Assembly (NCBI GenBank): GCA_001949185.1
Contig: BDGG01000006.1
Span: 1,780,827 to 1,844,826 of the forward strand
Reading direction: 5' to 3'
DNA length: 64,000 bases
Origin: Ramazzottius varieornatus
Taxonomy: Eukaryota; Animalia; Tardigrada
This document shows positions 15,106 to 17,918 of this stretch, piece after piece (position 1 is the first letter of the stretch; every line of letters starts with the position of its first letter). The notes under the pieces are model-generated. The model was not told the DNA's origin, searched no databases, and was given only the letters and a program-made list of their open reading frames with translations. A program made the translations under genes and the position numbers.

Positions 15106-17918
15106 ATGGCGAGCTCGCCCAAATCGAGTATTCTGGTCGTGTTTCTCTTGATCGGAACCATCGAAGCGGACATCATTTTGCGCGACGACTTCGATTCAGG
15201 CTCTCGATACCCAGACTTCGTCAAATGGACGACGACCTCATTTAGACCTCAGTTGTTCCAGGTTTTAAAGAACAGTGGTGCTTCAAACATCACTATAGAG
15301 CGTAAAAGCGGAAACGACACCGGGATACTATCCCTTACTTTGGACGTTGATGACTACCCGGGTCTACTTCTTGTAGAGAGTAGAGTTCCAATAAGCCCGC
15401 CCAACGAGAACGAAACAGTCTCGATCGAGGTCGAATTCCGGGCTAAACTGCCATACGAGAAGGGAGTCATCTCCACTGTATACCTCGGCCCGTGGTCCTG
15501 CTCATCAGAAAGTTGCCTGTTAGAGTATCCGAAGATTGTGCTTGTAGAAAGGAAGAAAGACAAGAAGGACGAGGAGGAGCGACCAGGAAGTACGCTTAAC
15601 TTCTACGGGTATTATGAAGACAACGGTGCACCAAGCTTCGAGAAGAGTGTCAATTTCTCCCGCGACATGTTCCAAGATTTTCACCTCTTCCGTTTTTCCT
15701 GGAAGCCTGATTGTCTGTACTGGTACGTGGATGATCAAATGGTTCATATAACATGTTCGGCTGGAATGATAATACCGGTCGACATGCGCTTGAACTTCCA
15801 AATTGAACGTGCGAAAGAATGGATGGCTCAGTATCCCTATTATGAACCCAAATACGCGCCGGTGTATCCGCCTTCGAGCTTGGAGATCGATTATGTGAAG
15901 GTCGAACGGTTGGGAAACCTGGCTACTGTTTCGCAAACTGTCTCGTCGGATGCAGGGCTAATTCCTGTTATTGTTCCCGCAGTCATTGTACCGGTAATTC
16001 TCATAGCAGCTTGTCTTTTTGCCATTTTCTTCGTCCGCCGGAAAAGAAGGACCAGGAAGACAACTCGGTCAAACAGAACAAAGAGAATGAGGAAAGAGAA
16101 ACAGAAGAACGAGCTGAACAGCTTAGCGATGGGATCCGATTGGATAGTCAAAAGGAAGTCCAATGATTACACGTTGTGGGAAACGCAAGATCCAGCTGTT
16201 AAGGAATATTTGAAACTCTTTGCGGTTCCATCTGACAAAATCACTAAGAGTACGTATTTTTTCTCGTTATCTGTTTCCTGGCATGGACACATACAGGGAG
16301 TGTAAAACAGATGTACCTAACGCTGGCTTTGTTACTGTATTTCAGCTTCTGTCCTATTGGGAAAGGGCGAATTCGGCACCGTTCATCAAGCACTCGTGGA
16401 AGGACTTCATGGTCGACCAGGCCCTGTTGAAGTTGCTGTCAAAACAATGATAATGGACGACTTTCACAAACTAAGTCAGATTCAGAAAGCCTTTGAGGAT
16501 GAAATTCTGGTTATGCTGAAAGCTGGACAACATTTGAACGTGGTGAATCTGCTGGGAGTTACAATATGCGGTACACAAAATCCACAAAACTGCTCACGTA
16601 GATTAGGCTTACAACATACCTGTTGCGTAATTCGATAGAATACCCAGCCTTAATTTTGGAGCTGTGCGAACTGGGATCTTTGCTGACCTACCTTCAGACA
16701 CGACGTCCGCCGTACGGAAACTACAGAAATCTGCTGAATGCACTGGGCGAACTGGAAAGCTCTGCCGGAAGCGGTTCACAGTCTCAAACTGAGGACTACT
16801 CAGCCTTACAAGCAGAAGCAGATGCAAACAAGGATTTGTCAACGAAAGATTTGATGAGTTTCTCATATCAAGTATGCCGAGGGCTGGAGTACCTTGCTTC
16901 TCGCTCCATTATTCATCGAGACATCGCAGCACGAAACGTACTCATAACCAAGCAGAAGATCGCCAAGGTCTCCGACTTCGGCATGGCAAAATGGCGCGAG
17001 AAAAATTACATCTTGACGGGAGGCTCTAAGGTATGGGTTGAATTACCTACACGCAAGACGAGAAATTATGATGCAGTAAAAGTTATGGGACAGGGGGAGT
17101 GGACGGCGAAATGGAAATTCGACCGTGAAAAAGTGTCGAAAAAGGTATTTCTGTAAATCGGTCGCGTACGTACCTGCTCCCGTACCGCCGTGGCGAAAAG
17201 ACCTGTACCATAATTTTTACTGTTCCTCGTCCTGCGTGTACTGTAAATGTTCGCTGCATCCGCGCAGTAAGTACCTGTACGTGACAATGCACCCCGTAGG
17301 GGGTTGCGCAATCCGTCAAACTGGACCGGGGCTGTACTTCACTTTTACAACGACGTAATGTGCGGATGCAGCGAACATCTCTAGTATTTTTCGAACTCTG
17401 AAGGCGGTATCTTATGGCCGTTGTTTAGGTTACTTTACCCATTCGATGGATGGCTCCTGAAGCGATTCGTTCACTCACATTTTCAGAGGCCAGTGACGTC
17501 TGGTCGTTCGGCGTCCTGCTGTGGGAGATATTTTCCCTGGGTCAAACGCCCTACTCGGGTATCCCGGTGAGCGGCCATGTTCAAGACTTCGTGGACTGGC
17601 TGGTAGCCGGAAACTGCCTTGCGAAGCCAGTGTATTGTCCCAATTGCATGTAAGGACGATACGACCAATACTTTGCATACCCATTACTTTACCGGTTTTT
17701 TCGTTTTTAGGTATGAAATCATGAAGTCGTGCTGGACAATATCCTCCGAGGAGCGACCCAGGTTCACGTCGATTCTTAGGCAAATCGAGATTCTAGTTTC
17801 GGTCGAGACGGCGAAGTATTACATCCTGCTGGATGAGCCGTATGAACGATTCAATCTCGAAAACACGCAACTATGCATTTCCCCCAGCGAAGAAGTAGAG
17901 CAAGTTGGCGAGAAGTGA
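15106..17918 (+). CDS. Receptor tyrosine kinase with GH16-like (concanavalin A/beta-glucanase fold) ectodomain; exons 15106-16249, 16346-16570, 16639-17030, 17429-17649, 17711-17918
   Basis: Signal peptide [23 protein letters not shown]16 motifs [43 protein letters not shown] helix [26 protein letters not shown] followed by RRKRR. Kinase motifs [43 protein letters not shown]. All four introns are GT-AG and phase-consistent. Confidence 0.92.
17247..17378. repeat. 17-bp perfect inverted repeat in RTK intron 3 (MITE remnant or hairpin)
   Basis: ATGTTCGCTGCATCCGC (17247-17263) and GCGGATGCAGCGAACAT (17362-17378). Confidence 0.65.

Follow-up and report, generated by a model that had tools for sequence, protein, structure and literature searches.

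The standard classification of animal receptor tyrosine kinases (RTKs) relies on a small number of ectodomain modules. The discoidin-domain receptors and Hydra 'Sweet Tooth', which has C-type lectin domains, are RTKs with ectodomain modules of a sugar-binding type. In plants, the L-type LecRK and CERK1/LYK receptors consist of a carbohydrate-binding-type beta-sandwich or LysM ectodomain, one transmembrane helix and a cytoplasmic kinase, and have undergone large lineage-specific expansions. Here we describe RvY_11618, a gene of the tardigrade Ramazzottius varieornatus. It is located in a stretch of 64,000 nucleotides (assembly GCA_001949185.1, contig BDGG01000006.1, positions 1,780,827 to 1,844,826 of the forward strand), hereafter the window, to which positions refer unless another contig or locus is named. 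We consider it likely that RvY_11618 is a type-I membrane RTK with a non-hydrolysing GH16 ectodomain and belongs to an expanded family specific to tardigrades, the ectodomain having come from the tardigrades' own laminarinases and having been fused once to a split kinase of the PDGFR/KIT/FGFR-like type. We found no RTK with a GH16 ectodomain in the literature.

The arthropod GNBP/betaGRP/LGBP proteins resemble RvY_11618 in having a GH16-fold domain without catalytic residues, for recognition and not for hydrolysis (PMC3981738). GNBP/betaGRP proteins possess an N-terminal glucan-binding domain, are soluble and act in a protease-cascade mode (PMC3981738). In contrast, RvY_11618 has no N-terminal glucan-binding domain, as the GH16 fold starts at approximately residue 21, and it is anchored in the membrane and has a tyrosine kinase of its own. 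The lineage differs too. RvY_11618 belongs with the tardigrade laminarinases, whose nearest named relatives are bacterial, in a tree without GNBP sequences.

The class III, IV and V RTKs (PDGFR, KIT, CSF1R, FGFR and VEGFR) share with RvY_11618 a type-I topology, a split kinase with an insert, and the HRDxAARN and PxxWMAPE motifs. They have Ig-like ectodomains and protein growth-factor ligands, whereas RvY_11618 has one GH16 jelly-roll. The discoidin-domain receptors and 'Sweet Tooth' also differ from it in fold, with F5/8-C discoidin and C-type lectin domains, respectively, in place of GH16. In function, RvY_11618 is most nearly analogous to the plant receptor kinases of the lectin and LysM types, to which it is related in neither half. 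The plant receptors have RLK/Pelle Ser/Thr kinases, other lectin folds and an independent origin, whereas RvY_11618 carries a metazoan tyrosine-kinase signature.

Gene structure and splicing

RvY_11618 is encoded on the forward strand at positions 15106-17918. Reading of the open reading frames (ORFs) and splice sites gave five exons separated by four GT..AG introns. The NCBI record GAV00823.1, 'hypothetical protein RvY_11618-1' (P0072), is 729 amino acids long and contains the five exon translations in order. Exons were searched singly, and whole-protein steps were run on P0072. The gene has the following features:

15106..16249, + strand: exon 1, residues 1-381 plus 1 base, with signal peptide, GH16-like domain, transmembrane helix and basic juxtamembrane region; read from ORF and splice donor, and identical to residues 1-381 of GAV00823.1
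15106..15165, + strand: putative signal peptide, residues 1-20; hydropathy peak in the windows at residues 6-9 and hydrophobic segment at residues 7-20; predicted from hydropathy and not by a dedicated predictor
15166..15921, + strand: non-catalytic ectodomain of GH16 fold, residues 21-272, with 4 N-glycosylation sequons and 4 Cys
15532..15549, + strand: what is left of the catalytic strand; K143-I-V145-L-V-E148 at the columns of the E-x-D-x-x-E motif in alignments A1 and A2
15955..16038, + strand: transmembrane helix, residues 284-311, followed by RRKRRTRK; Kyte-Doolittle values up to 3.1 in 19-residue windows
16250..16345, + strand: intron 1, 96 nt, phase 1, GT..AG, at the juxtamembrane/kinase boundary
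16346..16570, + strand: exon 2, kinase N-lobe (GKGEFG, VAVK); PF07714 at 1.3e-8; RNA contig
16571..16638, + strand: intron 2, 68 nt; RNA joint in three runs
16639..17030, + strand: exon 3, with kinase insert (16701-16844), HRDIAARN (16914-16937), DFG (16974-16982) and activation-loop Y580; PF07714 at 1e-25
17031..17428, + strand: intron 3, 398 nt; zero depth in run X1 and loose contig ends
17429..17649, + strand: exon 4; PF07714 at 5e-17
17650..17710, + strand: intron 4, 61 nt; RNA joint; its retention gives the annotated 661-residue isoform RvY_11618-2
17711..17918, + strand: exon 5, end of the kinase, C-terminal tail with Y697, Y698 and Y705, and stop codon; PF07714 match

The evidence for splicing comes from Logan RNA contigs of four studies, aligned to positions 14600-18100. 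Such contigs are evidence of presence and splicing, and expression levels are not derivable from them. The joint between exons 1 and 2 (16249 to 16346) was found in three runs. One contig of run X1 spans 56 nt of exon 1, the whole of exon 2 and part of exon 3. The joint from 16570 to 16639 was likewise found in three runs, and the joint from 17649 to 17711 in run X1. At intron 3, the loose contig ends at 17032 and 17427 (TACTTTAC; CTTGACGGGAGGCTCTA) are identical, letter for letter, to the first bases of exon 4 and the last bases of exon 3, respectively. Since the RNA contigs carry the exon joints, exon 1 is spliced to the kinase exons, as a preliminary description made from the DNA letters alone had supposed. 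RvY_11618 is a real, expressed tardigrade gene, with transcripts that are spliced in independent studies.

The isoform RvY_11618-2 (P0059, 661 amino acids) results from retention of intron 4, which cuts the kinase after ...CPNCM. Contigs with unspliced intron 4 (17650-17710) were found also in runs X5-X7. The retention may represent incompletely processed RNA rather than a functional isoform.

The GH16 ectodomain and its lost catalytic site

The protein has only two hydrophobic segments by hydropathy, residues 7-20 and residues 284-311, consistent with type-I topology. Between them, exon 1 has a Pfam match to PF00722 (GH16) at residues 109-219, scoring 33.6 bits against a cut-off of 22. This is the sole match in the ectodomain, and no Ig, FN3 or Cys-rich module was found there by Pfam. 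A sequence search of the PDB matched the ectodomain to Bacillus lichenases at 2e-9. AlphaFold (AF2) produced an ectodomain model with a predicted local distance difference test score (pLDDT) of 80.6 and a predicted template modelling score (pTM) of 0.83 from the 125-row alignment A2. This alignment was needed, as the single ectodomain sequence gave a pLDDT of 34.6. The top Foldseek matches of the AF2 model are all GH16 laminarinases or lichenases (4DFS, 4BQ1, 3AZX and 1GBG), with E values of 4e-11 to 1e-9 and template modelling (TM) scores of 0.6-0.69. In the ESM Atlas model of the protein, residues 21-275 can be aligned with GH16 clusters, with TM scores of 0.68-0.73. Pfam, the PDB search, the AF2 model, Foldseek and ESM Atlas thus all return the GH16 fold that had been proposed from the motifs. 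As modelled, the RvY_11618 ectodomain is a single GH16 beta-jelly-roll.

This fold is common to the ectodomain, to the bacterial-type laminarinases of Thermotoga (3AZX, 4DFS) and Cellulosimicrobium (3ATG), and to the tardigrade protein RvY_12782. The enzymes retain E-I-D-x-x-E and the cleft tryptophans, whereas RvY_11618 reads K-I-V-L-V-E. In both A1 and A2, the segment 'YPKIVLVE' aligns with the catalytic strand, so that the nucleophile Glu is replaced by K143 and the Asp by V145, and the acid/base E148 is retained. The early reading of this segment as a lost nucleophile therefore stands.

For comparison, we used 104 aligned sequences that have E/D/E at the catalytic columns; 46 columns are conserved at 85% or more among the 104. 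The RvY_11618 ectodomain retains 21 of these 46. Those retained are mainly core residues, namely FRDDF, W41, E110-x-R112, H193, W199, W206-x-x-D209 and D262. The losses include W122I, P123S, W126Y, W140E and H169Y, as well as A-V-G-G and the motifs N-E-L-Q-Y and Y-T-S-G. Several of these presumably correspond to residues that line the sugar-binding cleft in GH16 laminarinases. Judged from these residues, the GH16-like domain of RvY_11618 is catalytically dead and not an enzyme member of CAZy GH16.

The catalytic E/D/E triad is absent from every member of the GH16-RTK family that we inspected. In Paramacrobiotus, the RTK family members P0048 and P0049 and the secreted protein P0009 retain 39-41 of the 46 positions, the cleft tryptophans included, and lack the catalytic E/D/E only.

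The kinase

All kinase motifs are intact (GKGEFG, VAVK, HRDIAARN, DFG, PIRWMAPE and DVWSFG) and the tyrosine-kinase signature is complete. Pfam family PF07714 matches all four kinase exons. The kinase is split by an insert of approximately 48 residues at residues 478-525. Its nearest solved kinases in a PDB sequence search are those of KIT, PDGFR, CSF1R and FGFR, with approximately 198 bits and an E value of 1e-57. From its motifs, the kinase looks catalytically competent.

The first intron is located directly before the Gly-loop, at the boundary between juxtamembrane region and kinase, and three introns lie inside the kinase. The preliminary description was right in placing ectodomain and transmembrane helix in one exon; its statement that the kinase is split by four introns needs correction, four being the total and three the number inside the kinase. 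Pfam, hydropathy and motifs agree with its overall layout of signal peptide, GH16 domain, transmembrane helix and intact tyrosine kinase with insert.

In a tree of kinase fragments, three other R. varieornatus kinases (C16:550225, C1:6518617 and C6:321922) share a well-supported clade with the RvY_11618 kinase. Neither a hidden Markov model (HMM) nor tblastn found a GH16-like ectodomain within approximately 6 kb upstream of these three. We also observed that the kinase at C6:321922 is nearly identical to that of the plus-strand paralogue on contig C19 over the fragment compared.

A receptor family in tardigrades

In the R. varieornatus genome (55.8 Mb, 200 contigs) we found at least 10 genes encoding a GH16-like ectodomain, then a transmembrane helix and then a kinase of the RvY_11618 type. 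They are distributed as follows:

Contig C6: RvY_11618
Contig C3: a pair of genes
Contigs C11, C9 and C4: one gene each
Contig C19: a pair, one gene on the + and one on the - strand
Contig C7: another such pair

The two genes on C3 encode two GH16-like domains each in addition to the kinase (RvY_06820 = P0051, 947 amino acids). Some of the paralogues fall below the Pfam cut-off for GH16; a family-specific HMM scores them at E values of 1e-15 to 1e-19. An intron at the juxtamembrane/kinase boundary is present in eight of nine paralogues inspected, RvY_11618 included, and the junction of the ninth (C11) is unreadable. The juxtamembrane motif (V/I)P-x-x-x-L-x-x-S precedes this intron, and the x-x-L-G-x-G-x-x-G loop follows it.

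Paramacrobiotus metropolitanus has at least seven members (P0003, P0019, P0042, P0043, P0048, P0049 and P0050), which are automatically annotated as 'FGFR3-like', 'PDGFR beta-like' or 'VEGFR3-like'. In Hypsibius exemplaris we found one member, P0015, automatically named 'kita'. Such names mirror the likeness of the kinase to those RTK classes. Recognition of the family corrects automatic names like 'FGFR3-like', 'PDGFR beta-like' and 'kita', which could lead work on FGF and PDGF signalling in development astray. RvY_11618 had at first been taken for a singular chimera; it is one of at least 10 paralogues, in a family that occurs in three eutardigrade genera. As the architecture is common to these three genera, the fusion of GH16 domain and kinase must be old.

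An exhaustive HMMER search of 1.84 billion representative sequences with exon 1 found no relative below an E value of 1e-12, and we therefore regard the ectodomain as having no close relative outside tardigrades. The kinase-bearing matches in that search are tardigrade proteins only. We found no large ESM Atlas cluster that combines GH16 with PK_Tyr, and nothing relevant in the literature on GH16 with tyrosine kinases, these locus tags, the tardigrade kinome or horizontal transfer of tardigrade glucanases. This is in line with the earlier suggestion that the architecture is not a described one. RvY_11618 apparently belongs to an undescribed, expanded, tardigrade-specific RTK family with a dead GH16 ectodomain.

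Some minor observations concern the paralogues. Neighbouring pairs in opposite orientation are located at G000:C7:1839181-1848315 and G000:C19:260464-263294, and the C3 pair is on opposite strands approximately 11 kb apart. The paired arrangement on C7, C19 and C3 suggests local duplication. Two kinase fragments, G000:C3:1700923-1701294 and G000:C3:1525346-1525797, are 68-71% identical to the C11 and C3 paralogues, are interrupted by in-frame stops and probably represent dead family copies. The plus-strand paralogue on C19 (L011 5395-7974) encodes approximately 400 extra unassigned residues, within the ectodomain exon, between the GH16-like part and the transmembrane helix. The C4 and C7 paralogues, with exons of 675 and 709 amino acids, have a long unassigned second half.

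Origin of the GH16 module

Among intact proteins, RvY_12782 (P0075), on the minus strand at G000:C8:276283-277250 (L006), is the closest to the RTK ectodomains. It is a secreted GH16 protein of 250 amino acids with an intact E-I-D-V-M-E, encoded by a gene with at least one intron. From its sequence, it is apparently an active laminarinase. A Cys-x4-Cys...WPP loop precedes its catalytic strand, and the Cys-x4-Cys loop is common to the RvY_11618 ectodomain. Counterparts in Hypsibius and Paramacrobiotus are 62-68% identical to RvY_12782, and among solved structures it is closest to bacterial beta-1,3-glucanases (E 4e-33). Further GH16-like fragments are located immediately downstream of RvY_12782 (L006 5155-5809).

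A maximum likelihood tree of GH16 was built from 72 domains and 252 columns (LG+C20, UFBoot/SH-aLRT). It omits three domains shorter than 170 amino acids, the C9 gene, in which an intron interrupts the domain, and the GNBP-type metazoan GH16 sequences. All 16 rows of RTK ectodomains form a single clade (97/99) together with two metagenomic sequences and four dead tardigrade GH16 proteins without a kinase, which are the secreted P0009 and P0018, P0005 with a transmembrane helix only, and the product of a C5 gene. This dead clade nests (99/96) with secreted tardigrade enzymes whose catalytic residues are intact, RvY_12782 among them. The next named outgroups are bacterial, a Chloroflexota metagenome-assembled genome (MAG) in the P0086 cluster and Verrucomicrobiota MAGs. 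Exon 1 has a G+C content of 0.47, equal to its flanks.

Because the ectodomains nest in the tardigrades' own secreted laminarinases, we take the module to derive from a resident gene family and not from a recent graft. From this tree we conclude that recruitment would have taken place before the Ramazzottius/Hypsibius lineage split from Paramacrobiotus. A bacterial origin of the whole tardigrade GH16 enzyme family, at a much earlier time, is possible.

Strain variation

The runs X5-X7 carry a second strain that differs at approximately 2% of positions. Of the codon differences between the two strains in exon 1, 14 are synonymous (252 sites) and 13 are non-synonymous (891 sites). This gives a ratio of non-synonymous to synonymous differences per site (pN/pS) of approximately 0.26, as computed on 27 codons from a single pair of contig consensuses, and suggests purifying but not strong selection on exon 1. 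Among the non-synonymous differences is W130S (codon 130, 15493-15495), which in the second strain alters the G-P-W-S-C loop directly preceding the former catalytic strand. At 15102, four bases ahead of the ATG, this strain has one inserted nucleotide.

Proposed function

We propose that catalysis was lost before, or together with, the recruitment of the ectodomain to the receptor family, and that a single fusion would have joined it to the PDGFR/KIT/FGFR-like split kinase. As the nucleophile Glu and the Asp are lost, the dead ectodomain of RvY_11618 could bind but not hydrolyse. An extracellular ligand on the former substrate face would then cluster the receptors, which a polymeric ligand would do naturally, and the activation-loop Y580 would be trans-phosphorylated after clustering. 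Phosphotyrosines in the insert (Y482-G-N and Y485-R-N), the juxtamembrane region (Y355 and Y368) and the tail (Y697, Y698 and Y705) may dock SH2/PTB adaptors. For the family as a whole, a beta-glucan-like polysaccharide is a plausible ancestral ligand, since the cleft-preserving members P0048, P0049 and P0009 exist in Paramacrobiotus. RvY_11618 itself may bind a different glycan or a non-glycan, because its binding face is remodelled.

The preliminary description went further and suggested a pattern-recognition RTK. In this reading the ectodomain would bind beta-1,3-glucan or mixed-linkage glucan from microbes or food, with direct coupling to tyrosine phosphorylation. The fold and the nearest enzymes, which are laminarinases and lichenases, agree with such a function. 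So do the three Paramacrobiotus proteins in which loss of the triad left the cleft in place, the classic route from enzyme to lectin, and the arthropod GNBPs are a precedent for a dead GH16 domain in immunity (PMC3981738). In RvY_11618, however, the cleft is replaced at W122I, W126Y, W140E and H169Y, N-E-L-Q-Y and Y-T-S-G are gone, and the strains differ at W130S in the loop adjoining the former active site. With most cleft residues lost, we find beta-glucan sensing as it was put forward doubtful for this gene. A realistic possibility, although we would not yet call it probable, is that the GH16 scaffold has been re-used for another ligand, either a glycan such as chitin or a cuticle or matrix polysaccharide, or a protein or peptide, endogenous or environmental, with the paralogues as a diversified repertoire. 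The extensive divergence of the binding face around a retained jelly-roll core points in this direction, as do the long branches and great diversity of the R. varieornatus paralogues, some of them below the Pfam cut-off, the size of the family with its tandem and head-to-head gene pairs, and the moderate pN/pS. On the other hand, positive support for any specific alternative ligand is absent, and the divergence is compatible with glucan binding through new residues, with positions 126 and 169 still aromatic as Tyr.

Two further explanations concern the status of the gene and its origin. RvY_11618 might be a redundant paralogue drifting towards pseudogenisation, as could be read from its long-branched ectodomain, the broken copies of the family with in-frame stops on C3 and the annotated isoform that retains intron 4. 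We think this improbable: the five exons are open, the kinase motifs intact and the transcripts spliced in independent studies, and the synonymous rate is approximately four times the non-synonymous rate. Even less credible is a recent horizontal gene transfer (HGT) by which a host kinase at this locus would have acquired an intronless GH16 gene of foreign origin; the preliminary description had mentioned a perhaps horizontally acquired module as a possibility. Exon 1 is indeed without an intron, the nearest named relatives of the tardigrade enzymes outside tardigrades are from Chloroflexota and Verrucomicrobiota MAGs, and a springtail GH16 laminarinase is reported to be bacterially acquired (Song et al. 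2010, as cited in PMC3981738). The ectodomain nests in tardigrade GH16 genes (99/96, 97/99) and not directly with bacteria, however. The architecture is the same in three genera and in at least 10 R. varieornatus paralogues, the G+C content matches the flanks, and the resident enzyme gene RvY_12782 has an intron. On these grounds, any transfer would concern the ancestor of the whole enzyme family.

Our preferred reading, an RTK of an expanded tardigrade family with a non-hydrolysing GH16 ectodomain recruited from resident laminarinases by one fusion, has to be weighed against four observations. The tree of kinase fragments, built on 125 columns from single exons, has too little resolution to demonstrate monophyly of the GH16-linked kinases. 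The RvY_11618 ectodomain has a very long terminal branch (2.4 changes per site), and its exact sister within the dead clade is unsure. Since only 21 of the 46 enzyme-conserved columns remain and most conserved cleft residues are lost, even a lectin function can be put forward only tentatively. Finally, the estimate of constraint on exon 1 has the narrow base given above.

A bolder scenario would have a bacterial-type laminarinase, possibly acquired by HGT in an early tardigrade, turned into the ligand-binding head of the RTK family, with the divergent paralogues as a glycan repertoire by which detection of fungal, algal or microbial polysaccharides is wired directly to phosphotyrosine signalling. 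The family would then be the counterpart, in animals, of the lectin and LysM receptor kinases of plants. We consider this scenario possible in outline and rather unlikely as a whole.

A GH16-derived ectodomain would constitute a new RTK class and a clean natural case of an enzyme becoming a receptor head. If ligand binding is true, a non-model phylum would have built an environmental or immune sensing system of its own. The family contains a built-in series from intact secreted enzyme to dead secreted protein, dead protein with a transmembrane helix only, and RTK with a dead domain. Within this series the cleft is preserved in Paramacrobiotus members and remodelled in Ramazzottius, so the transition from enzyme to receptor should be experimentally tractable.

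Neighbouring genes

The following ORFs surround RvY_11618 in the window:

13541-14044, + strand: chromodomain ORF (PF00385, 3e-15)
14711-15058, + strand: ORF of 115 amino acids, ending 47 nt upstream of the RTK start codon
18863-19426, - strand: GNAT acetyltransferase (PF13673, 3e-13)
20462-20887, + strand: WAP four-disulfide-core ORF (PF00095, 5e-9)

The chromodomain, GNAT and WAP neighbours show no functional link to RvY_11618. The ORF at 14711-15058 was considered as a LysM protein that would form a two-gene module of LysM and GH16. We rejected this, since the ORF matches no Pfam family even when hits up to E<=10 are admitted, and the genome contains no paralogue of it. In run X1, coverage by RNA contigs is almost continuous from 14680 to 15580; because these contigs run across the ORF, it may be located in the 5' untranslated region of RvY_11618. 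The two strains have three differences in this ORF, two of them at second codon positions.

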